A DNA stretch of 64,000 nt from Girardia tigrina (taxonomy: Eukaryota). Both the position numbers and the translations under genes were made by a program. The DNA lies in NCBI GenBank assembly GCA_001938485.1, contig MQRK01233137.1:1-64000 (forward strand), in the 5' to 3' direction. Below the pieces are notes generated by a model. That model had not been told where the DNA came from. It was given only the letters and a program-made list of their open reading frames with translations, and ran no database searches. This document shows, piece after piece, positions 7,131 to 55,975 of this stretch (positions within the stretch are counted from its first letter, which is position 1; the number at the start of each line of letters is the position of its first letter).

Positions 7131-7632
7131 TATTAAGAACATTTAAATAAGTCCCGTTTGAATTTTTATTACAATCACATTTAGGGTCATTATGACTCTC
7201 AGAAAGTCTTTCATCATTTGTCATCTTTCTAATTGGTTTTCTTATTTCTGTTTTAATCATGATTATTCGAACAATTTTCTAAGTTATTTTTTTTAAAATA
7301 TTTAACCTCTAAAAATATTAATCAAAAAATAATAATTTTTACAATTTCTAAATAAATCCCAAAATAATAAAAATGTCATCAAATTATTAAAAATGCATTT
7401 AATTTAAATTTTACTAAAATTATTAAACTTAATTTTAATTGTGAAATTAAAAATACGAATTTATCAAATGATTATTTTAATTATGTTCGAATAGTCAATC
7501 ACTTTAAATTTAAATAAAAAAATACCAATTTCCATCTGGGTGGGAGAATCACCATTCTAAATTCAACATACCTAAATCAACATACAGCATCCATACATTT
7601 ACACATTCAAACAATTTAAAATATTCCTCACA
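7131..7632 (-). repeat. 3' LTR of Gypsy element
   Basis: Near-identical to 10657-11158. Starts TGTGAGGAAT, ends CTTAATA, preceded by short purine-rich GAGGTGGA (weak PPT). Confidence 0.95.
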
Positions 7633-9655
7633 TCCACCTCGGTTTAAATTGCTTTAGCCATTCTACATTTCTGATCAAGATCCTGCCGTTCTCTAGTTGT
7701 ATCTCATAACTTCTTTCGTGTCTTTGCTTTATAATTTTAGCTGGTCCCATATAACGATCATCATCTTTTGATGGGTTAACTTTCTTTATCAAGACTTTAT
7801 CTCTAACCTGAAATATTCGCTTTGTTTCAATTATATTTTTATTTTCTTTTTCTCCACTTTTTCCTTCTGTTGTAGTTTTCCACCAATGTCTTAGTTTTCT
7901 TCCGAAGATTATCTCAGCTGGAGATATTCCAGTTGTTGCTTCAATTGTACCGTTTAACATGAATTCTATTTCTGCCAACATTTCTACCCAATCTCTATGC
8001 ATTTCATCCTGTAATCGTATATTTATGGCGTCTCTTATTGTTCTGAATTGTCTTTCAATGATTCCGTTAGTGTTGTGGTGATAAACGTTTGAATAGATTA
8101 TCTCCGTCTTAAATTTCTTCGTCGTTTCTTTAAAGAGTGCTGATTCGAAAGTTTTCCCTTTATCAACGTGTATCTCTTTTAGTGGTCCGAATTTCCAAAT
8201 CCATTTCTCTAATAGTACCTTTCGTGTAGTCTTCTCGTGTTGGTGTGTCACTGCGGTCAAGCTGATGTATCTACTAAATTGATCGATTATTGCTAAAATG
8301 TATTGGTATACATTCATAGTCCTTCTGAATGGTTCGCAAAAGTCTTCTTAATGTTCTTTTATAAATGTTTTTCTTTGTCTTTTGCAAAGATTAGAATATC
8401 GTCTAGGTATACAACTGCTTCTTTCCAGTTTAATTCTCCTAACACTCTTGTCATTAGTTCTTGAAATGTTGCTGGGGCAGCTGCAATTCCGAATGGCATT
8501 CTTTTAAAACAATATTGGCCGTTCTTTGTCGAAAATGCAGTTTTTAATTTTGAATCGTTCTCCAATTCAACTTGATGATATGCACTCCCAAAGTCGATTG
8601 TGCTGAAGTATTTCGCTCCATTTAATGTATTTAGCATTTCTTCTACATTTGACATTGGAAATGCTGATATGATTGTGACTTTATTTAATTGTCGAAAATC
8701 AACACATACTCGGATATCCTGTTTGTCTTTTTTTCCATGCGCATACTAGCGGAAAATTCCACGGCGCACTGCATTTTTCAATGATATCATTTTCCTCGTA
8801 ATTCTTGATAATATCATCTAGTTTTCCTCAAAGTGTTTTGGCTGTCGGTACGGTTTTACCAATATTGGTTCTCCTTGCGTTTCAATTTTATGCTTAGTTA
8901 GTGTGGTCTTCCCTATATCCCATTTTTCCGCCATAAATATCATTTTATATTATATTAGTAATTTTATTAATTGTTCATCTATTTTATCTGCGTATATTTC
9001 CCTTATTCTTTTAAGTTTGTCTCCATCAGTTAAAGTATCGCGTATTACCAGCATTCCTTCGTCGTATCCTGTTTCTTTATTTAGTTTTATGCTGAATTTA
9101 TTTAGAAAATCAATTCCTGCAATCATTTCGGGTTCTAAATCTTTTACCATAAAAAATCCACTGTTTTCTGTATTCTTTTAATCTTAATCTTTAGTTGTAC
9201 TATTCCGTAATTTACTAGTTCCGAGTCGTTAGCACAGTGTATACGTTTTTTGTCTCCTTTATTTTGACATCTTTGATATTTTTGAGTAAATCTACTTTAA
9301 TTACATTGACTTGTGCTCCCGTATCCAATAGACATCGTACTTTTTTATTCTTTATTTGAAATTCTATATTCGGTCTTCCTTTCAGTTCTTCGTATTCTAT
9401 TTTAAACTTTGATATTTTCATTATATCTGTGCTTCTTTCTTCATCTTTTTCTATGATCAAACTGTCACATTTCTCATTGTGTATTTCATTTTCACCATCT
9501 AATATACACAATTCCTGAGGAATATTTTCAACAGCATCCTATACACAACATATGTCATCATACAAACAATCATTCATACAGTCAAACATACACATACATT
9601 CGTTTCTTAGTGAAGTGTACTGATCACTTCTCCCTGTGACCGTGCCTCCTCGTTT
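7628..9655 (-). pseudogene. pol: pol fragments: aspartic protease, RT N-terminal half, integrase core and C-terminus
   Basis: LLDTGA (protease), MPFG and YLDD (RT), IDQFSR, HVDKG and TNGIIERQFR (integrase). RT C-terminus, RNase H and HHCC are absent at a junction near 8345. Confidence 0.93.
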
Positions 9656-10750
9656 CCCTGTTCGTCTCTGAAATTTTTCTTGTTTGTAATATTTTCTCTT
9701 CTTGTTAGACTTCCTCCTTTATTCGATCTTTCCGACATTTTTTTCCCACTCATCATCAGAGTCTTCTAATTCTGCTACTTGGTCTCTTTTATTCTTATAT
9801 TCCATCCAACCTCTGTACTGTGTGTTTGCGTATTCTTTTCCTTCATTTCTTCTAATCCTTGTATCTTCTCTTCCAGATTGTTCGCGTTCTCTAAATCTGT
9901 TTGGATTCTCATAACATTGTGTTCTTACATGCCCTTTCTTATTACAATGGTTGCATTTAACATTTGGACATTCCTATCTCACATGTCCTTCTTCATGGCA
10001 GGCCCGACATATGATCCTTCTCGCATTAAAATTTCTTCTTGGTTCTTCGATCTTTCTCTCTTCGTATCTTGGTCTCGGTCTTCTTGTTCTATATTCTACT
10101 TTCTTCCATTCTTTATTTTCCTTTGTCGTGTATGCGTCCACTCTTATATTCCTTTGCCCTTTCAGCTCAAATTCGTAAATTTTCTCTTGGATATTTTTTA
10201 TATCTTCTACTTTTGTGGCATTTCTCAGAATCATTTCTTTTCTTACTTCTCTATCTTCGATGGCATTGGCGTAAGCTAGATCTGACAGTTCCTTTTTTCC
10301 TAGTTTTTTCTCAACTAGTTTTTCAAGTAGTTCATCAATCTTTTTAAATATTTCTGATGGATTTTTATCCCCGATTCTAATCTCTACAAGCTCCTTCATT
10401 ATCTCTAAAATATTCTTCTCTTTCGAGAATGCACTTCTCATTCTTGATTCCCAGCTTCCTTCTTGTATCTTCTCATATTTGTTTATCACTTCTGGGGTCA
10501 TGAATGCTGTAACTAATATCTCTTTTCTTTCTTCCATAAATCCCAAAATCTTTGAATATTTCTCAAAGCTTATTAAGAATTCTTCTAATTTTACTTCTGA
10601 CCCATCGAATGTCTCCGGTCTCTTGATCACTGGTGTCACGTGGTCGTGTGTCGCCATATTAAGAACATTTAGACAAGTCCCGTTTGAATTTTTATTACAA
10701 ACACATTTAGGGTCATTATGACTCTCAGAAAGTCTTTCATTGTTTGTCAT
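9607..10750 (-). pseudogene. gag: gag with two CCHC zinc knuckles
   Basis: ORF 9974-10750, then CRACHEEGHVR*EC and CNHCNKKGHVRTQC. Nonsense codon at 9974 and a later frameshift. Slippery GGGAAAC at 9652-9658. Confidence 0.9.
10639..10656 (-). promoter_or_regulatory. Canonical-type primer binding site (TGGCGAC..., possibly tRNA-Arg)
   Basis: TGG immediately after the LTR end. Partial similarity to the complement of the tRNA-Arg 3' end (TGGCGACCACG, recalled). Confidence 0.6.
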
Positions 10751-11158
10751 CTTCTAATTTGTTTTCTTATTTCTGTTTTAATCATGATTAGTCGAACAAT
10801 TTTTCTAAGTTATTTATTTAAAATATTTAACCTCTAAAAATATTAATTAAAAAATAATAATTTTTACAATTTCTAAATAAATCTCAAAATAATAAAAATG
10901 TAATCAAATTATTAAAAATGCATTTAATTTAAATTTTACTAAAAATTAATAAACTTAATTTTAATTGTGAAATTAAAAATATTAATTTATCAAATGATTA
11001 TTTTAATTATGTTCAAATAGTCAATCACTTTAAATTTAAATAAAAAAATACCAATTTCTATCTGGGTGGGAGCATCACCATTCTAAATTCAACATACTTA
11101 AATCAACATACAGCATCCATACATTTACACATTCAAATAATTTAAAATATTCCTCACA
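10657..11158 (-). repeat. 5' LTR of Gypsy element
   Basis: TGTGAGGAAT...GTTCTTAATA followed directly by TGGCGAC. Confidence 0.95.
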
Positions 11159-15811: not shown

Positions 15812-16507
15812 ATGGACAATTCTCCGTTCTCGGAAATGCTTGAAGCGGTCGATAAATTGTTTTCTCATCGAGAAATCACCGAAGACGACATCAAGTCGCT
15901 TCAGGAGAGTATTTTCATGTATATCATTCCGCAATTTAACGAAGCGGTTATTTTGACCGATCTTCTCGGAGTTCCGAGAAATAATTTGTTTAATTCGATT
16001 AATAATGCTTTTATCGATAAAATCAAATTGAAATTATCGAACAGTCGGAATCTGCGGGCGACACGTTTGAGCGGGGTGGACGCGATGATTTGCGTGACTG
16101 ATATCGGTGACACTGGTCATATCACAAAGCATGAAATCCGTGTGTTGTTGCGTCACTATTGGACGAAAGGCTTGACAACACGAGATGCTGCCAAGGCAAT
16201 TTGCAAAGTTGAAAGTAGACAAATGGTTGGAAAAAGTACGGCAATTGATTGGTTCAAGCGTTTCAATAAAGGCAACTTTGACTTCAATGACAATCCTCGT
16301 TCCGGACGACCAACGAAATTGGATAACGATGACTTACAAGCAGAGTTGGACATGAAGCCTTCGTCAAGCACTCGCGATTTGGCATTTAAGCTTGGAGTTG
16401 GCAAGTCAACCATACATAGGTATTTGAAGCAGCTCGACTTTCTGCACAAGAAACCGCGTCAAGATCCACACGAACTCACCAAAGCACAGGCCGATAAAAG
16501 AGTCTAA
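15812..16507 (+). CDS. Chimeric ORF: 99 aa of unknown origin fused in frame to a mariner transposase DNA-binding domain
   Basis: Mariner similarity starts at DTGHITKHEIR (16109). Contains WFKRF, PRSGRP, second HTH and DPHEL linker; stop at 16505-16507. Confidence 0.6.
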   Translation: MDNSPFSEMLEAVDKLFSHREITEDDIKSLQESIFMYIIPQFNEAVILTDLLGVPRNNLFNSINNAFIDKIKLKLSNSRNLRATRLSGVDAMICVTDIGDTGHITKHEIRVLLRHYWTKGLTTRDAAKAICKVESRQMVGKSTAIDWFKRFNKGNFDFNDNPRSGRPTKLDNDDLQAELDMKPSSSTRDLAFKLGVGKSTIHRYLKQLDFLHKKPRQDPHELTKAQADKRV

Positions 16508-17182
16508 ACTTGCCGAAAACTGCTACAAAATCCACGAGATGGCCGCTTTTGGAAACGAATTGTGACGTCGGATGAGAAGTGGGTCTACTTGGTCAACCAC
16601 AACCGAGACAAGCAATGGGTTCCACAGGGTCAAGCAACACCATCAGTTCCTAAACAAGATCGATTTGGCTTAAAAATCATGTTGTGCGTCTGGTGGAACT
16701 TTGAGGTGGTTCAGAACGGCCAGGCCATCAATGCAGAGCTCTATTGTAAACAGCTCGACTGTGTCTACGAGAAGCTCAAGGAGAAGTACCCTGCCTTAAT
16801 CAACCGAAAACGGCTACTATTTCAGCAAGACAATGTCAAGCCCCATACTGCCAAGAAGACCACTCGCAGGTTCCAAGAGTTGAATGCAGTCGAAATCCTG
16901 CCGCATCCTGCTTACAGGCCTGATTGCGCACTATCCGATTATGGCATCTTCCGATCCATGCAACACTTCTTGAAAGGCCGCAGATTCGAAGCATTCGATG
17001 AAGTTGAACAAGCATGTCAAGAGTTCTTCAATTCGAAGCAGCCGGAATGGTACTTTGACCAGATCCGAAAGCTTGCAGACCGTTGGCAGAAAGTAGTCGA
17101 AAGCGATGGACTGTACTTTGAAAATTCTTACACAAAAAATTGTATTTTTCATTCTTGACCAGGAACTTTTAGGACAACCTAA
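16109..17182 (+). mobile_element. mariner (DD34D) element lacking its 5' TIR
   Basis: TSDEKW, QDNVKPH and YRPDCALSDY in the same frame past one stop. 3' TIR revcomp TTAGGTTGTCCTAAAAGTTCCTGGTC ends at 17182. Confidence 0.93.
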
Positions 17183-18461: not shown

Positions 18462-19918
18462 AAGTTTTAAACTTAAGTGATGAAACTTTAAATGAAGATG
18501 AAATGAATTTATTAAAATTTAGTCCTAAACATAGTATTCGTAAAAAAATTAATAAACATAAATTCCAATCAAAAATTATTTTGTATGTTAAAATAATGTA
18601 TGTTCAAGTTTTATAATTTAAATTACCCGCATTTAAATAAAAGCGTGGATTTTGAAAATTTTAAAAATGTACTTTATAAAAATAATATTAACTATATTAA
18701 TAAAAATGCAAAACAAAGTAATAAATATTTTTTAATTTTAAAAAATCTTTCAAAAAAGAATATTAATATCTGTAAATACGATAAAGGTAATGGATTGGTT
18801 ATTTTAAATGAAAAAGAGTATATTAATAAAATGGAAAATGTACTTCAAAGTCAGCAATTTGAAAAAATTGATAAATTTAGCATAAATGGGAAATTAGCCC
18901 CTTTAAAAGATGAAGAACATCTCTCGTCTTTATAAAATAAATTAATTAAAAATGGACACCTTGATGAAAAATTAGGGAAGCAATTAAAACCAATAGGTTC
19001 CCAACCGGCTAAGTTATATGAACTTCCTAAAGTTCACAAGGATGGTGTACCTATGCGTCCAATTCTTTCAATGGTTCAAACTGCACAATATGACATCGCT
19101 AAATTTTTAGACTTAAAGTTAAAATGTTTAATATCTGAAAAGTATGCATGTCGTGACAGTTTTGAATTTTTTAACTTTATTTCCAATTATGAATTAAGTA
19201 ATAAAAATGAATTCATGGTTTCGTTTGATGTGACTAGTTTATTTACAAACTAGTAAATAACCCGTCATGTATGACGGATATAATTATATAGTTATATAAT
19301 TATATAATTACAATTGTAAGTAGATAATTATATTAATAATAATTCATATGGAAAATTATCATGAATAATTCTGCTAATAATAATTTTCCATATGAATTAT
19401 TATTAATATAAATATCTACTTACAGTTGTAAGTAGATAATATGAGCGTTAGTGAAGCAGTGAGTGACTTGGGCTTTTATAAGATAAGATATCCCACTAAA
19501 TGAAACCATAAATTTATGCTGTGAAATTTGGAAAAATAATTCTCATGAACACAAAATTTAAACGTGGTTGCATTTCGAGAACTTTTGACATTTGCCACAT
19601 CAAATATAATTTTTTTATTTAATAATCAATGGTACAAACAAGTGGATGGTGTTGCAATGGGATCTCCATTAGCACCAACATTAGCCTCAATTTTTTTGTC
19701 CAAAATTGAAGAAAATATTGATTTGTTTTCCGGTTATAAACCACTTGTATATAAAAGATATGTAGATGATGTATTTTTAATTTTCGAAAATAAAGATCGT
19801 GTAAAACCATTTCTAAATTATATGAATTCGATCCATTCTAATATCAAATTCACAGTAGAGGAAGAAGTGCAGAGTATTCTACCATTTTTAGACCTATTGA
19901 TCAACAGGAAATCTAATT
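18462..19918 (+). mobile_element. Penelope-like element RT region, decayed, running into an assembly gap
   Basis: DKGNGLVIL, LPKVHKDGVPMRPI, SFDVTSLFTN, GVAMGSPLAPTLA, RYVDD, IKFTVEEE and LPFLD motifs. Confidence 0.93.
19250..19488 (-). mobile_element. Non-autonomous Helitron inserted in Penelope RT
   Basis: Minus strand starts TC and ends CTAG, inserted between A and T with no TSD. Subterminal hairpin CCGTCAT..ATGACGG. Removing it restores FTN-IPL. Confidence 0.9.
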
Positions 19919-21329
19919 NNNNNNNNNNNNNNNNNNNNNNNNNNNNNNNNNNNNNNNNNNNNNNNNNNNNNNNNNNNNNNNNNNNNNNNNNNNNNNNNNN
20001 NNNNNNNNNNNNNNNNNNNNNNNNNNNNNNNNNNNNNNNNNNNNNNNNNNNNNNNNNNNNNNNNNNNNNNNNNNNNNNNNNNNNNNNNNNNNNNNNNNNN
20101 NNNNNNNNNNNNNNNNNNNNNNNNNNNNNNNNNNNNNNNNNNNNNNNNNNNNNNNNNNNNNNNNNNNNNNNNNNNNNNNNNNNNNNNNNNNNNNNNNNNN
20201 NNNNNNNNNNNNNNNNNNNNNNNNNNNNNNNNNNNNNNNNNNNNNNNNNNNNNNNNNNNNNNNNNNNNNNNNNNNNNNNNNNNNNNNNNNNNNNNNNNNN
20301 NNNNNNNNNNNNNNNNNNNNNNNNNNNNNNNNNNNNNNNNNNNNNNNNNNNNNNNNNNNNNNNNNNNNNNNNNNNNNNNNNNNNNNNNNNNNNNNNNNNN
20401 NNNNNNNNNNNNNNNNNNNNNNNNNNNNNNNNNNNNNNNNNNNNNNNNNNNNNNNNNNNNNNNNNNNNNNNNNNNNNNNNNNNNNNNNNNNNNNNNNNNN
20501 NNNNNNNNNNNNNNNNNNNNNNNNNNNNNNNNNNNNNNNNNNNNNNNNNNNNNNNNNNNNNNNNNNNNNNNNNNNNNNNNNNNNNNNNNNNNNNNNNNNN
20601 NNNNNNNNNNNNNNNNNNNNNNNNNNNNNNNNNNNNNNNNNNNAGCTTCACACTCAACTTCTCTGTTAAACATTTTCAAATAGAGCCTTTATTACATGAT
20701 TGATTACATAATCACCTTTCTCATATATAAGCTGCAAAAAGCCAGTGTTAATTTAGTCTGAATATGGCGGGTAATCAGCCGAAATTAATTACGAAAATAA
20801 ATTGTGAAAAATGGCGTTCACTTTTTAATAATGAATATCAATTGCCATTATTTTTTAAATTCCTTAGTAAAGATTATTATATTGTATTAAACCAATCATG
20901 CATTTTTTTAAATAATTCATATTTTTACTTTTTTAATATTAAATTAATATTTTTAAAGATAAATGCATTAATATATTATAATACTAATACTACTACTAAT
21001 AATAATAATTAGTAAAATGAGCATAAGAATGAAACAATAAGGATCGCAACGTTACAAAAGCAATATATGAAAATATATGAAATTTGAAATATCCTCATCA
21101 TATCAGTATGTTTTACAAAATTTATCACTTTTGTAATCAGCTACAATTTTTGTAGAGAAACAATTTTCCAAGACATGTTTTTGCAAAGCCAACCATTAAA
21201 GACAGATTGTTTAATTGAAAATATCATTGACTACCAATTAAGTCAAAAAGTTTTTTTCAAAGATAGACTATATTGTATGTAAAACAAAGATCCTCATTGC
21301 AAAGATAACTAATAAATCTAAAATATGCT

Positions 21330-21950
21330 AGGATAGGAGCCCCTTGACTCCAATCATCGATAGTCTCTGGTGGGCGTTTGTCGATAACTCGTTCCTGTCC
21401 CGAATCCCCTCGACCCGTTTCTCGATCACTCGATCGTGCCGAAACACGATATCCCCGGTCACTTTCACCGCGTACAACCGCACCCTGAGTCCCAGTCGGC
21501 CCAGCACGAGCGCGTCAACGCCCATCCATCCACGCTCTCGACCACCTCGAGATCCCCGCGGTGCGTCCTGCCGTCCCCGACCACGGTCGTGATGTCAATC
21601 CCAATCCTCTGAATCGCCGTCGAGATAAAACTACCAACCAGTCGGTTCCGCTCCCGAAATAACCACCGCCTCCGCGATCCCCTTGGGCACCGCCACAGGC
21701 CTTCACACCATCCTCAGACTAGCCACAACACTTCCCGCCGGAAACCGATCGGACTGGCACCCCCGCCGATACCTTCGAATCCCTTTTGGTGATCGCTCAC
21801 ACCAGCACAGTCGCCGTCTGCTTCAAATGGCCCCTAAACGACTCTCGCCGGATCCTATCCGAGATAATGGCCATCTTTCTTGAGATCAAGGATTTGCCGC
21901 GATAGCTTGTAACAAAGCAATAACGCAAGGCGGTCGAAGCAAGATTTTTT
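21330..21950 (-). mobile_element. GC-rich LTR-retrotransposon-like remnant (LTR end, atypical PBS, degenerate protease-like coding)
   Basis: ...TTGTTACA then AGCTATCGCGGC, then an ATG about 22 nt later. Peptide GSFIS...VVGDGR...GDIVFRHD loosely resembles a retropepsin. Confidence 0.5.
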
Positions 21951-31525: not shown

Positions 31526-31913
31526 TATTAAGAACATTAATTGAGTTTCCTTTATATTTATTATTATCACAATTTGAATTGCCACTAGAACAATTCTCCG
31601 TAAAACATGCGTAGCTCGTCATCGTTCTTGATTGATAATCTTTAATAATATTCTTTAACATCTTATTATTCAAAGAAATTTAAATTACAATTTAATTATT
31701 ACAACAATAATTTTTATTTATTTTAAGAAAATTATTATTTATGAAATATTAGTTTAATTTTAAAGTGATTATTTAAATTTTAATAATTGATTAAACAACC
31801 CGACGTTTTAAAATATTTAAGATACCAATCTTCCATCTGGGTTGGAGAAACACAATCCTAAAACAACATACCAAACAACACACAATAAACACCATTCAAA
31901 AATATTCCTCACA
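31526..31913 (-). repeat. Solo LTR of a diverged relative of the 7131-11158 family
   Basis: Starts TGTGAGGAATATT, ends AATGTTCTTAATA, shares the cccagatggaa..ttggtat box. TSD degenerate (CATCT/CAACA). Confidence 0.8.
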
Positions 31914-32619: not shown

Positions 32620-33238
32620 TGGTTGCCACTGAGAACCCCTATGATGATTCGTTTCCTTTCATTCGGTGTCTCTCTCACGATAAATATAAGATCATTTGCG
32701 AAAATTTGCTTTGGCCATATTGATTTCTCCCTGGCTTCCGGAGCTCCATGTATCCTTGTTGTTATTTCCGTGTAGTATTTCCGCCATTGAACCATGTAAT
32801 AAACATTTTTTAATCTCCAAATACCTTCGGTTGTACTGGATCATTTCGTTCAGAATATGTTCGGCGACCCGTTCCAAATACACCTGCAACTCGAAAGGGA
32901 GTCAATCAATCAAGGCAGCCTTTGTTAGATCGTCAATCTTTGACGCTAACATCTTCACCTGAGACGCATATTCATCGATAGTCTCGCCCTTGTGATACTG
33001 CAAGTTTGTCAATTGACTGTACACAGAGCGTCTAGTCAGGCCAATTGAATCGTTTAAAATCTTGAAGAACTGATCGCAGCTGCTCTGCAATTTCTCGTTC
33101 GATTTCATTTATATGTTCATTGCCACCCCTGATATTAAAAAACGGAGGTAAGGGGCTAGATCGATAAACCTCTGAATCTTCACGATCGTTTCAAATTTCT
33201 TCTCCCAGATCTCGAAGCTAACGCTTCCATCGAAGAAC
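32620..33238 (-). pseudogene. gag: Second gag fragment of the short-LTR Gypsy group
   Basis: FFDGSVSFEIWEKKF...GETIDEYASQV is alignable by eye with the gag at 34000-35278. Confidence 0.75.
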
Positions 33239-34410
33239 CACTGTAAACATCGATATATTTGTTCAATTCCCTGAAATCGAACACAGGTCTTATCTTATCC
33301 TTATTCAACTGGGTTATACCATAAATGGGGATCGACCCCACTGACGCGCCCATTTTTTCGTAGTCATACTTTATTAAGTATCCTTTTTCCATCCATTTAT
33401 TTAAAATATTCATCGTCGATTTGTCCTTTGGTTTTGACTCATTCAATACAGTTTTTCTCCACGGTTACTGATCGGGGATATCCGATTTCCAATCCCAAGA
33501 AACTGTCCACACTTTGTCAAAACAAATTCTGAAATTATGTTTCTTCGTGCCACCCTCTACAGTAATTCTAGTCCCAGACAACTCGACACTTGGACCCGAA
33601 GTACAAACATTTACTAGATCGGAACTCACCCCAAACTTTACACTTCCATTATGAAACACCATTCCTCCTAATTTCGCAATGACATCAACACCCAACAATA
33701 AATATAAAATTTCCGGCAACGTATTCATTACAATACAATTTTCGATTACCTCTTTATCATCCACGTTGATCCTTGCTGTATATATACACACAAACACCCG
33801 AGACCCATTAGCCAGAGTAACTTGTTCTCGATTCCGCTGCATCAATGGTCCTTCCACATTACATCTTTTCACGACCGATTGCGAACACCCGGTATCCACT
33901 AATGCTCTGCAGTTTTTTTCCATTGACGATACATCGAATAACTGGAAGAGCCTTTAATCCCTCGAGAAGCCGCTGACGCTGACGACACCTCGCTCACGTT
34001 TTCCGCCCGACAGAATCTAGCAATGTGTCCCTTCCTTTGACATCTAAAACATATAATTTTACTCTTGGAAGGACTTTTAGGAAGATCCTCTTCCGTCTTT
34101 TGAACGCTCTTTTCGTCAGCTTCATACGGTTTTTTAACACTCTGATCCGCGCTAACGCCGCTACGACTACATCCTTCCAGTCTATTTATTCCCCTCGATC
34201 GTATAAACTCACCATTGAAGTATGAGTTGTGTTTTCTGCAATACTAATATACGTCCGGCTGACTTCCACTTTTTCACTCCATTCTCGGACTCCTCGTTTC
34301 TCGATTTCCAAAGCGATTTCCGCTGGTAATCCGGCTAAAAATGCAGCGATTTCTAGATTGTCAACCGTTTTTGCCAATTTCGACACTTCCGCAGTGTACT
34401 CATCAATAAT

Positions 34411-34987
34411 ACTTATGAGGGGTTAATTTAAATTTTTATCTCACCTGAATAATTTATTATTTCTTATTTTAAAGGGTAAAATATTTTAATATTAATATGC
34501 TTATTCAATATTTTAAAATTAAAAATGATATAATAAAACAACTATTAAAAAATCAAAAAAGTTTTTAAAAATAAAATATTTTTTAATGTGTTTTTAAATA
34601 TTTTAAAAAANNNNNNNNNNNNNNNNNNNNNNNNNNNNNNNNNNNNNNNNNNNNNNNNNNATGTATCTATTAAATATCTTAAAATTAAAAATGTTAAGAA
34701 AACTATAAAATTTTAAATATTTATTTATAAATAAAAATATTTTTAATAAGCAATTTTAAATAAATTTTGAAAATAAATTATAAATAATTTTTGAAATAAA
34801 TTTTTGAAATAAATTTTCAGGATTTTAAAAATTGAATTGAAAAGAATTTAATAGATTAATCTGTGGCGAGATAATTAAATTAACAGGAAAATTTGTTTTA
34901 AACATGTGAATTTTTATAGAAATAAATTTTGGTGTTAAAAATTGAACTCGAATAGCGACGTTGCAACCACCTCTCACAGTACTAAAA
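34411..34987. mobile_element. Unclassified AT-rich non-autonomous element inserted in gag (copy 1)
   Basis: Collinear with 50585-52447 (acttatga.gggttaa...ttgcaac.ac.tctcaca.tactaaa). TCAATAAT occurs on both sides of this copy. Confidence 0.8.
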
Positions 34988-35279
34988 TCAATAATTAATA
35001 ATACATTTAATACACTGTAATTTACGATAAGCCCCTCGTGGTTTCACACCAAACACTGCATTCAATACTCGAAAAACTTCAATATTCGCTTGTTGCTTCT
35101 CTGACATCTCCATATATATATTGAGGGTCGATCCACTCAACACGAAGGGCATCAATACAAATACATCCTTTATCTGCTGCATCGACGTCAATAAAACGAA
35201 CTGCTTCTTCCACAGTTCTCACGATTGATTCCCATTGAATTTCTCAAGACAATCGAAGATCAATTTCATGTTCGACATA

Positions 35280-35291
35280 GCCCGGATAGCT
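35280..35291 (-). promoter_or_regulatory. Atypical PBS complementary to nt 1-12 of tRNA-Lys(UUU)
   Basis: Plus strand reads GCCCGGATAGCT, the 5' end of metazoan tRNA-Lys(UUU). It lies between the LTR-terminal ACA and the gag ATG. Confidence 0.75.
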
Positions 35292-35449
35292 TGTTGTAGA
35301 GAATGACAATGAATAACAAGTTCCTAAATTGTATTAAATAGAAAGAAACGCGTTTTTCGCAATAAACGGAATATTCAAACAAAATATAAAAATCGAATTA
35401 ACAAAATTATTATTTTCGATTATCATCTCATCCCACACAAATTTAAAAA

Positions 35450-41007: not shown

Positions 41008-44000
41008 GGATCTTGTAAAAATTCTGCCCCTAGGGACAGGACTTTAGCATGATCAATTTAAGGGGAGTATTTTTAATAAATGTAATTTTAGGGGTAAAGT
41101 TTTAATAAGGGTAATTTTAAGTGCAGAATTTTGACAAGTATAATTTTTTTACCTATATCAGATACTTTTTATGAACACACGGCAAGAGACTTTAAATGCA
41201 GATATTACATAATTGATTTTATTCTTTTAATCAAGATATGTATTAAAATCAATGATGTTGTGTTCTCATTGTTATCAACAAACAGTATTGACTAAGAAGG
41301 TAACGCCCTTGGACAAATATGTCTGGAATTTTTAAAATAATTTGTTCTAAATGCAATATAACCTTGACCATAAGAAGATGCTCTTTACTGACCATTTCAT
41401 AGATAAGTCTGATGACTTGGTTAGATGTTCAAATGGTCAAATGAAGAGTCTAAAATTTTAATTTTAAAATCTTTGATTATTTCAAGACCTACATTAACCA
41501 ACTGTTCGATTCACCCTGGGGGAGGAAATGAAGGGGATTGACATTCAAAAGGTCAATTCAAAAATGTTATGAAAACGAGCAAGTCACAAAAATCAATTGA
41601 CATTAATGAATATGTTCTTGAAAATCGAAATCTCGCAAACATTTTATTGATTTTGCAGAATTGGTTTTTCGAATCCACCAGGAAGATAATGGATCTTTAC
41701 GAACCTGACAACGAAGATTTCTTCTCTGAATTTCTAAATAAATTTACTGTGAATGACAAAAGAAATACAGTCAATGACATTCCAAACTGACGCGGATTTT
41801 AAAACTCAAACATAAAAAAGAAGTCAATGTTGTAGATAATCAGAATTTCCAGAAACGAAATTATCAAGATATCAACTATAATGAACAATCAATAAGAAAT
41901 GCTTATGGAAATATTCAAAACGATGATGATCTATTGTAATTAAACGTGCAAGTAAAAAATCTAATACTCGATAATCAATCAATATCCAACCAATAGTTGC
42001 TTTTTTTCGAATGTTCGATCGATAATTGTGACAATTGTTTCCGAGTTGTATCAAAATTGTATAAAAAAATAATTGTATTAATAAAAAAACGAACAAAAAA
42101 AATGAAAACTATATAGACATAAAAAATATATCTATATAGTTACAAAAAAGAGAATTTCAAAAAAAGGTAACTTATTTATAATAAAACAATATTGACTTTT
42201 GTAAAAAAAAGTGATTAAGCAAAAATTGTTTTGTTTAAATGGATCTATTTGTTAAAATCAATTCATTGTAAATCCGCGGAATTTTGTAAAAAAAATTTAT
42301 ATACGTGATTGATTTCGTTGTTCATTATTTTTGATTGTGATCTCTTTATTAATCGACCATCTCCAATCAACATTTAAAGTGCTAATGAGGACCGAATCAC
42401 TTTCACAACTAATCAATGTTAATTCTTTATTGAGAAGGGCGAGTTCGGTCCACTGTAATGTTCGCAAATCGAGGCTGAAGAGCTGACTAGAACGGACGGT
42501 CGCGGACGAGTCTCGGATTCAGAGTGGTTCCCAGAATACGAGCATTTGGCTGTCTTTGGTCACGGTGGCGTTGTGGCTCAGAAACTCGGCCCTCGGTTGT
42601 CGGCTTGCCCCAGTGGCCACTGGTCAGGCAGAACACGAGTATCTGATTTGTCCAACCACGATCGTCTCTACCCGACACATTAACAGCAATTTGGTCTAAT
42701 TCTTGCTTCATTTTTTTTATTTCCAAGTCGATAGCAATTTTTGATTCAAGATCCAGAACATCTTCATTTTCAACAAGCAAAGGTGGATTTTCAATATTCA
42801 TATTTATTCGCGTATAATTCATTCAATAATAAATCGATAACTTTATTATATTCCAATTCTACAAAACTTATTAATTCGTTACAACACAAACCAACAAAAA
42901 TTAATTATTTAATATTTATGACAGAGCTATCGGAGCGTGGCTGCAGCACCATGATGCGAGTGGGAGGTTTTCAGGTCGAGGAGAATAAAATTTTAGTGCC
43001 TTATCATGAGAAATAGCTCCTCCTTGGAAAACCTTTTCAAAATTTAATTTATACGTGGCATATGTTTCATAATAGGCACTCATTTTTCAATCTGCAGCAA
43101 GTTTACAGGCTTTGGAATCATCGATGACTCTATGAGTTGATTCATTTATGCAATCCTGTTTTCCTCTCAGAATACGTGGAAGTTCACCACCGATTGTGCT
43201 GTTTCCTAATTTGAAAAGTTGCTCATGAAATTTATAAAGAACGTTTAGGCTTTCCTCTTTTTTCGAAACTGAATACAAATCTCACACCGTTGACCAATTA
43301 GAAAACTGAGAATTAGGCGGCTTAATACCATCATCACGGAGCAATATCAAACAACCATCATCACCGTCCAAATTCGAACCAGTTCTGTCCGCAATGTAGT
43401 AGCTTTTATCTCAGCACAGCCCGCCAAGATCAATCAGGACGGAGAAATCAAGCTCTTTCTCAAGAAAAATTTTCAACCGAATTTTTGATACACAATTTTC
43501 TCGATTCCCACTCCAAAAGAAGAACAAGAATGTATTTGCTGAGTGATTTTGCCTGTGATGTTGACGGGTAATATGAAGCTAAAGCAAGATCACAATTCAG
43601 ACGAAGCCAATTTTCTTGATAGTTCTCTTGCTCAAAAAATTGCTCATTTGCTTGGACCACATGTTACCGAAATGACAAAGGCTTTTTCAAAACAGAGAAC
43701 CAAGGTAAGTCGAGAAATGGTGTCGAAAGCACAGACAAAAGAGCAATCCAAGGTTTCAGATAAAAAGAATATGTGAACTTTTTTTGTGTCTCTCCCGTAC
43801 TCGTCCAGTGTCTCCGCGTTCCCAGCATTGTGCTGCGTCTACACTCCTGCCATCAACACTAACATTTTTAAATGTTTAAGATTAAGTATCAACAGACATT
43901 TTGATATTAATCCTGTTAGGCTGCGTGTTAATAATGTAGACTGTTCAATCGATGAAAGTCTATTTTGCCATAAACAAAGATACCATCGAGGTAAAGTTCC

Positions 44001-45204: not shown

Positions 45205-46813
45205 TTCATAAGTCGTCGTCTTAAGATATGGAACTATACTGCGATGTAATGTAAAACTTTTTGAATATGATATAAATGTATTACGACATGGTTTTTTACG
45301 CAGTACAACTTGAAGACATGAAAAGAAGAAGGTTTTACAATAATTGTTCAAAATGTTCACCATTTTTCTGTAAACACAGATTGCACCGCTCCACAAAATT
45401 CGTGTAGCATTTTCGAATGATGCGGTGATCGATGTCTGAAATGGCGCCTTGTAGTTCGTCGAGGTTCAGATAGTTATTTTCGATGGCGTAAACTCGATCT
45501 TTGACGTAACTCCATAGCCAGAAGTCAGGTATCGTCAAATCGTGAGACCGAGGTGGCCATTCCTGGGGTCCTCTACGACCAATCCATCTTTGTGGGAAAT
45601 GTTCATCCAGCCACGTTCGCGCTGCAATGCTGAAATGCGGGGGTGCGCCTTCATGTTGATACCAGTGTTGCGTGTTATCCCAAACAAAAGGCAGCAACTT
45701 CTGATTAAGAACGTCGACATATCGTACCTGGTTCATTGTTTCACGGATAATACTGAAAGTTATTCCAAGGTCGTAGGAAACAGCTGCCTAAACAGTTAAT
45801 CCCGGCGATTTCATAGGCACACGAATCAAACGATGTTCATTCTCTTCAGAATAATAAAAAAGATTATGCTTTCCCACATGACCATTAAAATAAAACGATG
45901 CCTCATCAGAAAAAATAATTCTTCTGCAAAAATTGGTGCCATTTTCGTTGATTATCCAAGAACAAAATTCAATTCTTCGATCTGGGTCATCTACTGTTAA
46001 CTATTGTTGAAAAGAAAACTTGAAAGGCTTTACCTTTTCTTGCTTGAGGTAACGATGAAAAGAACTCTGCGAAGTACCAAGGACACGTGTAACCCGTCGT
46101 TGATTTGCAGTATCGTTTTCTTTCACATACTGAACAACACTTTCCTTCATGTGTTCATCAGATGGTCTTCCTGATCGCGGTTTTGTTGACAAATTCCCCG
46201 TTTCTTCGAATTTCTTCTTCCAATGCTGAACCGTTGTTTTCGGTGGCGGTTCACGTTTGAAACGCTCTTTAAACATTTGACACGCTTTTGTGCAGCTTTC
46301 ATAAACGATTGCATGACTAGTGATGAAAACTTTATCTTTAATAGAAAATTCGACATTTCCACTTGCTTCAGCCACTGTACTGGCAGTTGGCGCATTTGAA
46401 TAAAAGTGAAAGTACACAAACTAATATCAGACATTTAAAATTTCAATTTCATAGATATTGAATAACCGGATAATCAATCAATAGGCCGTAAACAATCNNN
46501 NNNNNNNNNNNNNNNNNNNNNNNNNNNNNNNNNNNNNNNNNNNNNNNNNCTTTATAAGAGAAAAGGTCGAGTCAGACATCGATCACCGCATCATTCGAAA
46601 ATGCTACACGAATTTTGTGGAGCGATGCAATCTGTGTTTGCAGAAAATGGTGAACATTTTGAACAATTATTGTAAAACCTTCTTCTTTTCATGTTTTCAA
46701 GTTGTACTGCGTAAAAAACCATGTCGTAATACATTTATATCATATTCAAAAAGTTTTACATTACATCGCAGTATAGTTCCATATCTTAAGACGACGACTT
46801 ATGAATCGCACGG
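45205..46813 (-). mobile_element. Tc1/mariner rosa (DD41D) element with an inverted second 3' end
   Basis: PRSGRP, FSDEA, QHEGAPPH and WPPRSHDLTIPDFW; stops at 46001 and near 45781. 46572-46813 is an inverted copy of 45205-45439 ending in TIR plus TA. Confidence 0.9.
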
Positions 46814-49692: not shown

Positions 49693-50584
49693 AAAACAAA
49701 CTTTTTTTGACAAGAATTAATAGACATTGTAAATTTTATTAATATTTTGTAGCATAAGCTAAAACTACTTTACAACGATCAAGTATTGAGTCGACTAATT
49801 TATTCATCACATCCAAATGAATGCTGCTTCAAATATCATGAATTCTTTCATAAAGCTCACTCTTATTTTTAGGCTTATTGCCTTTCAAATAACGATCAAT
49901 GTATTCCAAAATATGTTCAGTAGAATTTAAGAACATTTTCATATATATTCATCACACATTTACTTTCTTCAGAGATATTTGAAAACCAGGAGGAATTTTG
50001 TGAGACATACTTATTCTGTCACATATTTCACATGGCCTACGTATTTTATTTCATCAAAAAAAGGTGTTTGGTTATCTTGAAAATAGTGAAATTTTCGGTT
50101 GACTTTCCCACCATAAATAAATCCAACTCGATGAATATCTCTTCCTGTTTTTTTCTCTTTTTGAACAAGAAGTATACGAAAAAAAGACGATTCGGTATTT
50201 TACATTTTCCAATGGTATTTATAAAATAATCAATAATTTATTAAATCTAATATAATAAATGTTTTTTAACTTGCTAATAATGGAAAAATAAATTTCATTT
50301 AAATCGGATTGTTTTTTATGGTTGGCTCACAAATTAGTGGGTGATATCTATGTGATATCTAATTAATTGTCGTCCTTGAATTCCTTAATTATTTGTCATA
50401 GACGACATTTATTGTTTTCCTGTTGTAATAAGTATGTCTTCTTTATTCATCAATCAAAAAATATTTCCTGGAAAATAAATGACATTTGTGAAGACATTCG
50501 AATCTTCATTACCCCTTCCATCAAAAATGGCCATGAAAGAATAACTGACCGAATATACATTATATATACATCCTTCTTCAATAT

Positions 50585-52447
50585 ACTTATGAAGGGTTAA
50601 TTTAAAGTTTCATCTCACCAAAATAATTTATTATTTTTTTTAATTTAAAAGGTAAAATATTTTAATGTTAATATGCTTATTAAATATTTTAAATTTAAAA
50701 ATGATATAATAAAACAACTATTAAAAAATCAAATACGTATTTAAAAATAAAATATGTTTTTAATGTGTTTTTTAAATATTTTAAAAAATTAAAAATGATA
50801 TTGGGTTGTTCGGAAAGTCATTTCGTTTTTTTGTATAAAAGTAAAAGACAAATTTTTATGACGAATAAATATTTTATTGAAATACATATTGACCATTGTG
50901 GTCCAATACCTTCTTCCATCATCCTGGCAGTGACATAATTCCACGTTCTTCCAGGTGATTTTTAACATCTTCATTTGATCCAAAAGTGTTACCATCTAAA
51001 TAATTTTGTAGAGACCGGAACAAATGATAATCAGAAGGTGCGAGGTCTGGAGAATATGGTGAGTGAGGCATGATGTTCCATTCAAGCTGTAAAAGCTTTT
51101 AGCGAGTTACCGAACTTGTATGAGGTCTGGCATTATCTTGGTGAAACACTACACCTTTTTTATTGATCAATTCCGGCCTTTTGTGTTTAAGGAATTGATT
51201 TAATTTGTCCAGCTGATGACAGTAGACGTTCAAATCGATCGTAGTTTTGTCCGGAAGAAGCTCATAAAATACGATTCCTTTGAAATCCCACCAAACAGAG
51301 AGAATCACTTTTTTTTGATGAATGTCAGCTTTCGAAGTGCTTTGAGCAGGTTGATCTTTTTAACTCCAAGATTTCTTGCGTTTTATATTATTGTAGTCTA
51401 CCCATTTCTCATTTCCAGTGACGATGCGCTTCAAAGATGGATCATTTTCTTGACGTTTGAGAAGCATATCGCAGATGTCTAAACGACAGCATTAATTTCG
51501 TTCGGTAAGATTATGAGGAATCCATGTGTCGAGTTTTGATGTAAAACCTAGGCGCTTCAAATGATCATGGACGGTCGAATTAGATAAATGTAATGTCTGG
51601 GCAATTTCGCGAGTTGTTATTCGCCGGTTTGAATCAATTAATGCCTTTATTATGTCTTCGTCGGCCTCAATGGGCCTTCCGGAACGTGAAGAATCTTCAA
51701 CATCAAAATTTCCGGATCTAAATTTTTTAAACCATTTTTGGCATTGACGTTCTGTCAACACATCTTATCCATACACTTCGCATTTTTTCTTCTTGATTGT
51801 ACAGCATTTTACCTTTTCGGAAGTAAAAAAGCAATACATGCCGTAAATGCTGATCCTTGCTTTCCATCTTTGATAGGTCAAAAATCAAATATAAATAATT
51901 TTAATTATTCCAGAATTTTCCAAATCTAACCTTGATTACTAACTGCTAAAATAAATAATATAGTCGATGATTATTAATGATTATTAATATAAAAAATACA
52001 TTTAAAACAAGTATTAAAAAAACGAAATGACTTTCCGAACAACCCAATATAATAAAAGAAAATCATAAAAATAAAAAATATCTTTTTAATGTATCTATTA
52101 AGTATCTTAAAATTAAAAATGATTAGAAAGCCATTAAATATTAAATATTTATTTATAAATAAAAATATTTTTACAGTCATAATATTTATATATTTTAATA
52201 TAAGTTATGAAACAATTTTAAATAAATTTTAAAATAAATTTTTAGTTTTAATGTGAAATGTATTTAATAAATTTGCAAGATTTTAAAAATTGAATCGAAA
52301 AGAATTTAATAGATTACTTTGTGGCGAGATAATTAAATTAACAGAAAAATTGTTTAAATATGTGAATTGTTGTTATATTAATAAATTTTGGTGTTAAAAA
52401 AATGAATTCAGATATTGATGTTGCAACTACTTCTCACAATACTAAAC
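50585..52447. mobile_element. Unclassified non-autonomous element (copy 2), split by a mariner
   Basis: Both flanks of the mariner match 34411-34987. Confidence 0.8.
50801..52047 (-). mobile_element. Full-length mariner (mellifera-subfamily-like), transposase inactivated
   Basis: Perfect TIRs TTGGGTTGTTCGGAAAGTCATTTCGTTTTTT with TA TSD. WIPHNL, HQDNARPH and YSPDLAPSDYHLF, with frameshifts and stops. Confidence 0.96.
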
Positions 52448-54419: not shown

Positions 54420-55497
54420 TAAGGTAAAAAATGTAATAGGAGATTTGAGTTTTTTTTGTGATTAAATAAAATGATATAGGTTTTAATTTCAGTAATTGTT
54501 TTATTTTATCAAATAAATTAAAATTTTTATTTCGAAATATTGAATTTTCGTCAGTGCGATGATTTTAGACATCGAATTTTGGAGCATTATCAAATTCTTT
54601 GTAATGCAGAAAAAGACGCGCATTGAAATCTATGCTTTTTGAAATCTTCAACTTACCTACATGACTCCCAATCTCTGACAGCTGGTAAATATTGGATCAG
54701 AGAGTTAAAAGATGGTCGCACCTCCGTTTTTGATCATGAAAAATCAGGTCGGCCATAAAGAAAATTTTGACACAGTTGATGAAAAATTAGAGAAGATGAT
54801 CCAAAAGGAGCGTCAAATTACCTTGAAAAGCTATGAGCGAAGCTTAACATCAATTTTAGTACAGTCCATGATCAATTGAAATCCATGAGTATCAGAAAAC
54901 TGTGCTCCAGATTCGTCCCCGCTTCTTGACTGGTGAAATGATTCGAAACTGCTAGGAGTGCTGTCAGAACAACTTGCAACTGTGGGACCAGCTTGGCGAG
55001 ACTTTCCCTGCAAATTTAAATACGGAGAATGAAACCCTACCCAGTATGTATTTGCTGGAAACAAAGCGTGAGTCAGCAGAGTGGAAACTGTCTGGAGAGA
55101 AGCCCTCTTTGAAGAAACGAACGGGGACAAATGGACGAGCGATGATGCTTTCCATTTACTGGAATTACAAAGGTGTTATTCTGATTGATTTCGTGGATAA
55201 AGATATCATACTTAACGCTGCTTATTACAAACCACTCGAGGAAACCCCCAGAAAGATTAGAGGGAAGTAGAAGAAGATGCAACTATGATTCTTCTCGTCA
55301 ATGTGCCAGTACACAGAGCTGGCATTTCTCAACCCCCATTTGAAGGGGCTTGATAAGTGCTTGTGGATCATGTACTGAGCATTTTTTTCTTTTTCAAACA
55401 CCTAAAGAAGCATTGGAGAGACATGGAGTTTGTATCCAAAGACAATTTGAAGGTTACCGTGGAGGATTTCTTTGCTGCACAAGTCACAGAAGTTTTC
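54420..55497 (+). mobile_element. Heavily decayed mariner (irritans-like)
   Basis: DGRTSVFDHEKSGRP, RFVP and MMLSIYWNYKGVILIDF remnants; ends not resolved. Confidence 0.75.
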
Positions 55498-55975
55498 AAA
55501 ATTGTTTTCTTTGACAGTGGCTACACTTAACGTTCGGACATTCTCTTCTAACATGACTTTCCTCATGGCAGGCCAAACAAATTATTTTTCTGACTTTATG
55601 ATTTCGACTTGTACCGTCTCTCTGTACTTCGTCTTTCCGTGGTTTTGGTGTTGTTCTTTTATTCTCCACAGTTTTCCAATTGTTTTCTTTCCTTGTGTTA
55701 TATGCTGCAATAGGTGAATTTCTTTTCTTTTTCCCGTATTCATACATCCTCATTTGTATGTTTTCGATCTCCTCTGCCCTTGTTATACCTCGAATCGCTA
55801 TCTCTTGATCGACGTTATCATCGTCCATCATATTAGCATAGACCAAGTTTGATAGTTCTTTCTTACCAAACTTTTTCTCCACTAATTTTTCGATTATCTC
55901 ATCTTAGATTTAGAATTTCTTATAGATTTCTCTTTTGAAAATGCTGCACGCATTTCTATTTTCTCTTCCTGTAAT
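55497..55975 (-). pseudogene. gag: gag fragment related to the 7131-11158 element
   Basis: EKKFGKKELSNLVYAN...KIICLACHEESHVRRECPNVKCSHC aligns with the gag at 9974-10750. Confidence 0.88.

Follow-up and report, generated by a model that had tools for sequence, protein, structure and literature searches.

The 64,000-nucleotide stretch of Girardia tigrina DNA analyzed here (contig MQRK01233137.1, positions 1 to 64,000; hereafter the window) carries on its minus strand the remains of a small long terminal repeat (LTR) retrotransposon, and a 12-nucleotide (nt) sequence directly after the LTR, AGCTATCCGGGC, is the exact complement of nt 1-12 of tRNA-Lys(UUU). Judged from sequence, and with a probability of roughly 0.7, the element is a truncated, dead copy from a widespread clade of small LTR elements and the 12-mer is its minus-strand primer-binding site, which pairs in this clade with nt 1-12 of a host tRNA and not with the CCA end. 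Clade-wide, the site lies right after the terminal CA of the LTR and ends opposite tRNA nt 1, and it occurs in a few discrete types that have been switched repeatedly. Its position and complementarity are best read as indicating that a 12-nt 5' tRNA fragment would be the actual primer. A broader proposal, which we put at somewhat less than an even chance, is that the whole clade (cnidarians, insects, and many uncultured aquatic eukaryotes) may have abandoned the tRNA 3' end and may start reverse transcription from a 12-nt 5' fragment cut in the D stem, which would be an unrecorded mode of priming.

On the plus strand of the window, positions 35280-35291 read GCCCGGATAGCT and are followed by TGTTGTAG at 35292-35299; on the strand of the element the order is ...CTACAACA, the 12-mer (35291-35280), a single T, and an ATG (35278-35276) from which the gag frame is open. 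An earlier reading of these letters (the sequence-only reading) had described a short LTR end, the 12-mer, one base, and the gag ATG with no TGG, and had placed the 12-mer exactly at the U5 boundary; both descriptions agree with the window sequence, in which the 12-mer directly follows CTACAACA and no TGG is present at the junction. The complementarity to the first 12 nt of tRNA-Lys(UUU) that had been claimed is likewise exact when compared with printed human and zebrafish sequences, and the tRNA-Lys identity is that of metazoan tRNAs printed in papers, not of the host's own tRNA genes. Specifically, nt 1-12 of the human tRNA-Lys3(UUU) gene match the window 12-mer (PMC8715211), as does the end of an antisense probe for zebrafish 5'tRF-Lys-TTT (PMC4688932). 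The complementarity is exactly 12 nt long, since the next tRNA base, nt 13, is C and the element offers A instead of the G that would pair with it.

To follow the junction beyond the window, 88 relative loci were retrieved and searched by a pattern scan and then by a gag-based check. The pattern returned 45 distinct junctions and, with variants outside the pattern included (L010, L012, L044, L052, L057, L074, L060/L065, L082, and L083, and in partial form L024), at least 50 distinct relatives carry the same junction. The layout is an LTR ending in CA, the 12-mer, 0-26 nt, and the gag ATG, and ACA immediately precedes the 12-mer in 42 of the 45. The share of the commonest base is 0.96-1.00 at positions -3 to -1 and at most positions of the 12-mer, 0.67 at -4, and 0.49 at +12, this conservation being partly set by the search pattern, of which columns -3, -2, and +9 are free. 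No TGG site was found at any relative locus, nor any other candidate primer site (i.e., a complement in the LTR). The loci lacking a junction are nearly all contigs that end short of the start of gag, with L064 as the single unclear case. The sequence-only reading had named full-length relatives with a TGG site or another LTR boundary, or a motif that is not conserved, as observations that would speak against it; what was found is the retention of the junction in these relatives, many of which have full coding capacity and some of which are young, with identical or nearly identical LTRs and target-site duplications. Young copies are present in the assemblies GCA_038396675.1 (Hydra vulgaris), GCA_028750875.1 (Macrosteles quadrilineatus), and GCA_963576615.1.

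The boundaries of the junction are fixed by target-site duplications in two relatives. The genomic locus L003 has 237-bp LTRs that are 95% identical and a 5-bp duplication, GTGGC; after the ...CGCA end of its 5' LTR comes AGTTATTTCGGC, which is a decayed version of the most frequent type, and the gag ATG stands 7 bases further on. The locus from Hydra vulgaris (L088) has 202-bp LTRs that are 100% identical, the duplication GAACC, and a polypurine tract before the 3' LTR, and its junction reads ...ATTACA, AGCTATTTCGGC, A, ATG. The leafhopper locus L087 is closely similar in layout (...TTACA, AGCTATTTCGGC, ATA, ATG), and L004, a 4.4-kb contig with complete gag and pol, reads ...TTACA, AGCTATCCCGGC, ATT, ATG. 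Some peculiarities of these contigs were also observed. The two LTRs of L087 (4776-4985 and 8489-8628) share only 140 nt, and the 5' LTR region extends about 70 nt further to the junction; the 3' LTR appears to be truncated, and no target-site duplication was seen there. In L008, L013, L014, L021, and L039 the junction and the sequence after it are present twice with a period of approximately 4.01-4.06 kb, and L004 has identical 114-nt ends; the repeats of approximately 4.0 kb look like LTR-collapsed assembly, or like tandem or circular forms of the element.

Could the tRNA resemblance be accidental, or a fragment of a tRNA pseudogene or of a short interspersed element (SINE)? The exact 12-mer occurs once in the window; when two mismatches are allowed there are three matches, and although 0.48 per window are expected by chance at that stringency, the match at the junction is exact, occupies a fixed structural position, and is repeated in more than 50 independent relatives, a recurrence that excludes chance. 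The shorter string AGCTATC is found just four times on the two strands of the window, three of them directly after ACA or ACAG. Furthermore, the likeness to tRNA goes no further than nt 12, the window has neither tRNA genes nor Rfam families, and an Rfam scan of the junction region was also empty, indicating that the 12-mer is not a piece of a tRNA pseudogene or SINE. This explanation as a whole is given practically no weight.

The 12-mers of the clade fall into discrete types, which on the element strand are AGCTATTTCGGC (14 loci), AGCTATCGCGGC, AGCTATCACGGC, and AGCTATCTAGGC (9 loci each), AGCTATCCCGGC (5 loci), AGCTACCTCGGC (3 loci), AGCTAGCCGGGC and CGCTACCGAGGC (2 loci each), and singletons at one locus each, which include the window's own type at the junction of L072. 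Three types are the complement of nt 1-12 of printed tRNAs, namely Phe(GAA), Lys(UUU), and Lys(CUU): besides the type of the window, AGCTATTTCGGC corresponds to tRNA-Phe(GAA), whose 5' end is printed as a human forward primer (PMC10505166) and as a 5' probe for Drosophila (PMC7038984), and AGCTAGCCGGGC to the 5' end of tRNA-Lys(CUU) (PMC12140204). In all three tRNAs nt 13 is C, and it is never paired by the element. The near-universal tRNA bases U8, A9, G10, and C11 are kept in all types, save one rare type with C8, and one unmatched type, as GCCGGGATAGCT followed by CAGTTG, was found in a chloroplast primer that resembles a tRNA 5' end. Nearest neighbors in pol share their 12-mer type in 23 of 45 cases, versus 5.6 with shuffled labels, and the type has been switched many times between elements that are 41-57% identical in pol. 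Discrete types that are related by pol yet often switched are what a primer set supplied by the host predicts, and the switching between lineages resembles primer switching in retroviruses (compare PMC13524379).

A different source for the primer would be the element itself, with the 12-mer pairing with the 5' end of the element's own transcript as in Tf1. The clade resembles Tf1/Tf2 of Schizosaccharomyces pombe in several respects: there too the primer is the 5' terminus of an RNA, the site stands right after U5, TGG is missing, and the primer length is comparable, since Levin in 1995 reportedly described self-priming of Tf1 with a primer of 11-12 nt. In Tf1 the RNase H of the element cuts the RNA duplex and frees the 3' OH, and a step of this kind would fit the present clade as well. 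However, the Tf1 primer comes from its own transcript, in cis, whereas the LTRs of the clade lack a complement of the site and the sites correspond to 5' ends of host tRNAs. The sequence-only reading had already taken the lack of a copy of the 12-mer in the candidate LTR as an argument against self-priming, and this argument holds at up to three mismatches in the window and extends to relatives: the LTR of L004 has no complement, and L003 has a single three-mismatch match in its 3' LTR that is no better than a match in its coding region. Thirty-one relatives have 300 nt or more of sequence before the site; the best match there was 7-9 of 12 and did not exceed that in downstream control sequence. 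These data leave Tf1-type self-priming unsupported. Moreover, self-priming does not predict a few discrete types common to elements that are only 40-55% identical in pol, three of which are tRNA 5' ends, and we consider it very improbable.

It should be noted that priming itself is read from position and complementarity, and the 12-mer might instead bind a tRNA 5' end, or serve in the leader in some other way (packaging, dimerization, or translation control), while priming is done otherwise. The closeness of the site to the gag ATG (0-26 nt) is in keeping with such a role, as the site makes up almost the entire leader after U5. On the other hand, the site always begins at the first base after the terminal CA of the LTR, which is the defining position of a minus-strand primer, and no relative offers another candidate primer site, whether TGG or LTR complement. 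A purely structural role is not supported by folding of 110-nt stretches around six junctions. On balance, a leader function with priming achieved by other means is regarded as unlikely.

Several observations weigh against the reading of the 12-mer as a primer-binding site for tRNA 5' ends. The folds at the six junctions revealed no shared or unusually stable structure (z -1.0 to +0.4), and the window copy is itself dead, being a truncated element with one candidate LTR. The commonest of the other types (tRNA strand GCCGCGATAGCT, GCCGTGATAGCT, and GCCTAGATAGCT) have no printed tRNA counterpart in the searchable literature, and neither the window nor the 42 relative loci scanned contain tRNA genes. 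Finally, the usual classes of 5' tRNA fragments (tRFs) are longer than a 12-nt piece that stops in the D stem, the described tRF-5 classes being approximately 14-30 nt long.

If the 12-mer is indeed the primer-binding site, priming might proceed as follows. The 5' strand of the tRNA (the acceptor strand, U8-A9, and the first three bases of the D stem) would pair with the RNA of the element, and the tRNA would be cut between nt 12 and nt 13 by a host nuclease or by the element's own RNase H, which would act, as in Tf1, where the RNA-RNA duplex ends. The released 12-nt RNA would provide the 3' OH for strong-stop DNA, and plus-strand strong-stop synthesis would later copy the 12-nt primer and run off its 5' end; under this proposal, a site of exactly 12 nt that ends at tRNA nt 1 would follow from the run-off. 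The sequence is silent on how the 3' OH at nt 12 originates, which leaves room for another small host RNA that shares the 3'-terminal ...GATAGCU, such as a transcript of tRNA-like or SINE type or a 5' tRF made beforehand and trimmed to 12 nt, and fragments of tRNA 5' ends are common small RNAs (e.g., PMC3413118). However, the complementarity stops exactly at tRNA nt 1 in all types, which fits the mature 5' end made by RNase P. Such a primer, which we judge distinctly unlikely, is a variant of priming by the tRNA 5' end and no true alternative to it.

To delineate the clade to which the window copy belongs, the protease open reading frame (ORF) was compared with 1.84 billion representative proteins; 76 matches were obtained, including pol proteins of approximately 900-990 residues. 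A second search recovered at least 889 pol proteins at E<=1e-20; Hydra vulgaris and Macrosteles quadrilineatus (a leafhopper) are represented among them, and hundreds come from metagenome contigs of approximately 3.7-4.5 kb. The elements are small (approximately 4-4.5 kb), with a gag that contains a CCHC knuckle and a pol in the order protease (PR), reverse transcriptase (RT), DUF7047, RNase H, and integrase (IN); their LTRs measure approximately 180-570 bp, and the short ones, of 180-240 bp, have the same TGT...ACA ends as the candidate LTR in the window. Eight long relatives were scanned for domains. Six of them have a weak RVT_1 match together with DUF7047, a PF00075/RVT_3-type RNase H, and an integrase core; a protease match was obtained in four and DUF7047 in seven, and among the matches listed almost all homologues contain the DUF7047 domain. 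A profile built from 14 pol proteins of the clade and compared with PDB sequences matched retroviral integrases best (7e-17), followed by the RT stretch of HIV Gag-Pol (7sep; 8e-10), Ty3 integrase (9e-9), and foamy-virus PR-RT (8e-8).

Assignment to an established group was attempted from the same data. All eight relatives lack the Pfam domains RT_RNaseH and RT_RNaseH_2 of Ty3/gypsy elements, their RNase H matching PF00075/RVT_3 instead, and the BEL/Pao domains Peptidase_A17, DUF1758, and DUF1759 are absent from them at E<=0.001. The label "Gypsy" that the sequence-only reading had attached to the element is thus unsupported, since Ty3-type RT-RNase H domains are missing and the pol profile is closer to retroviral integrase and RT than to Ty3. 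By its Pfam domains and PDB profile matches, the clade is accordingly left without a place among the LTR elements.

Of the features of an LTR retrotransposon, the window copy has a gag with a CCHC knuckle followed by a pol with protease and RT (Table 1). The similarity of its gag, protease, and RT start to the relatives (blastx, phmmer) indicates that it belongs to the DUF7047 clade: the N-terminus of gag aligns with residue 1 of the gag proteins of the family and the zinc knuckle lies near its C-terminus, the protease matches the pols of relatives at E 5e-15, and the RT start is 43-45% identical to residues ~210-277 of these pols (E 1e-16). Gag is broken: it has one premature stop and at least one frameshift, and a single copy of an unrelated AT-rich repeat is nested within it. 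Pol has an in-frame stop between protease and RT and is truncated within the N-terminal part of RT, so that it lacks the remainder of RT, RNase H, and integrase. A second gag fragment after the truncated pol, which matches family gag residues ~73-184 (blastx E 6e-6 to 3e-5), points to a rearrangement or to two dead copies side by side. A repeat search and blastn found no second LTR and no further copy of the candidate LTR within the window, and its length of 148 bp is for this reason a candidate only. Other copies of the AT-rich repeat nested in gag are located at 50575-50788 (91% identity) and 52089-52446 (79% identity).

Table 1. Coordinates of the primer-type sites and of the dead element in the window
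Feature	Positions	Strand	Remarks
Putative 12-nt primer-binding-type site, AGCTATCCGGGC	35280..35291	-	Adjoins the terminal CA of the LTR; 1 base before the gag ATG
Candidate 5' LTR (TG...CA)	35292..35439	-	3' end (35292) set by the junction; 5' end (35439) a candidate
gag, broken	33899..35278	-	zf-CCHC; blastx E 2e-10 to the gag of L058, from residue 1
pol fragment, broken (aspartic protease and start of RT)	33180..33923	-	gag-asp_proteas, RVP
Second gag fragment, 5'-truncated, broken	32690..33110	-	Weak Retrotrans_gag; directly downstream of the truncated pol
Second junction: LTR end TGTTACA, then AGCTATCGCGGC (21907-21896)	21896..21914	-	12-mer identical in 9 relatives
Junction-like site: ACA, G, AGCTATCGGAGC (42925-42936)	42921..42936	+	Unconfirmed

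The arrangement had also been said to recur at 21896 and 42924, of which only the first has a tie to the family, through a 12-mer shared with relatives. Positions 21896-21907 are taken as a second, more decayed junction of the family; in the GC-rich stretch after it (to ~21340) no recognizable gag was found, and similarity to gag was not significant. The 12-mer of the plus-strand site has no match among the relatives or printed tRNAs and is followed by no gag or LTR of the family; the site could be a 13-nt complement of a tRNA 5' end.

The remainder of the window is largely a graveyard of mobile elements, with approximately 28% G+C. Fragments of Mariner/Mos1-type transposases (HTH_48, HTH_Tnp_IS630) lie at 15812-17158 (plus strand) and 45335-46417 (minus strand), and a fragment of an RVT_1 reverse transcriptase from another retroelement at 18600-19917 (plus strand) is interrupted by a run of 725 N at 19919-20643. 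Other LTR elements have left an ORF for an integrase core and two gag-like ORFs that end in CCHC-type motifs (7628-8317, 9974-10750, and 55496-55882, all on the minus strand), and a clear primer site was not apparent ahead of the gag at 10750. A short motif, …cccagat.gaa..ttggtat…, stands upstream of two different mobile-element fragments, at ~11060-11090 and ~31830-31860 on the minus strand, and may mark a further repeat family.

The proposed site can be set beside the established ways of priming an LTR element. In canonical 3'-end priming (retroviruses, Ty3, Drosophila gypsy) the source is likewise a host tRNA, the site adjoins U5, and discrete types are switched; however, the canonical site consists of TGG and 8-18 nt complementary to the tRNA 3' end and the tRNA is intact, neither of which applies to the clade. 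A canonical site was therefore rejected, as TGG is absent in the window and at all 45+ junctions. Copia and Ty5 use half-tRNA priming. As in the clade, elements of this kind (copia, Ty5, and Candida albicans families) have a non-CCA site, and, as is proposed for the clade, their primer is taken to be a 5' piece of a host tRNA that is cut internally; in the C. albicans families the primer sites match internal regions of tRNA-iMet or tRNA-Arg(UCU) (PMC4139406). Half-tRNA elements differ in that they use an internal stretch next to the anticodon loop and a primer of ~39 nt, mostly from iMet, whereas the sites of the clade correspond to nt 1-12 and to tRNAs Phe, Lys, and others, with a cut that would fall in the D stem. 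A copia/Ty5-type site ending in the anticodon arm was likewise rejected, the complementarity being to nt 1-12 of Lys(UUU), Phe(GAA), and Lys(CUU). The clade, with its PR-RT-RH-IN order, also differs in pol order from the Ty1/copia group, to which it is unrelated.

Among small RNAs, the tRF-5 class resembles the proposed primer in starting at tRNA nt 1 and ending in the D arm. To our knowledge, no tRF-5 primes reverse transcription. Where tRFs are known to be linked to LTR elements, they are 3' fragments (PMC7472051). In the searchable full-text literature, older subscription literature aside, no retrotransposon site that matches tRNA nt 1-12 and no mention of these 12-mers in such a role was found, the matches to the 12-mers being tRNA primers and probes only; primer sites are unmentioned in the BEL/Pao survey. 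Priming by a 5' piece of tRNA (copia, Ty5, Candida) and by a short primer cut by RNase H (Tf1) is already known, and the proposed mode would unite the two, but as far as was searched we could not find a description of a site for nt 1-12 with a 3' OH in the D stem.

If true, priming by the first 12 nt of a tRNA would be a fourth source of minus-strand primers for LTR elements, beside the tRNA 3' end, the half-tRNA, and self-priming, and its user would be a very large and little-described clade. It would also give a function to very short 5' tRNA fragments, or would reveal a nuclease cut in the D stem. Standard annotation looks for complements of tRNA 3' ends only (e.g., a search for 12-nt complements of the tRNA 3' end; PMC13524379), and elements of this clade would consequently be reported without a primer site. 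A sharp 12-nt site ending at tRNA nt 1 would, in turn, be a simple signature by which to find the clade and to infer the tRNA pools of its hosts from metagenomic contigs.
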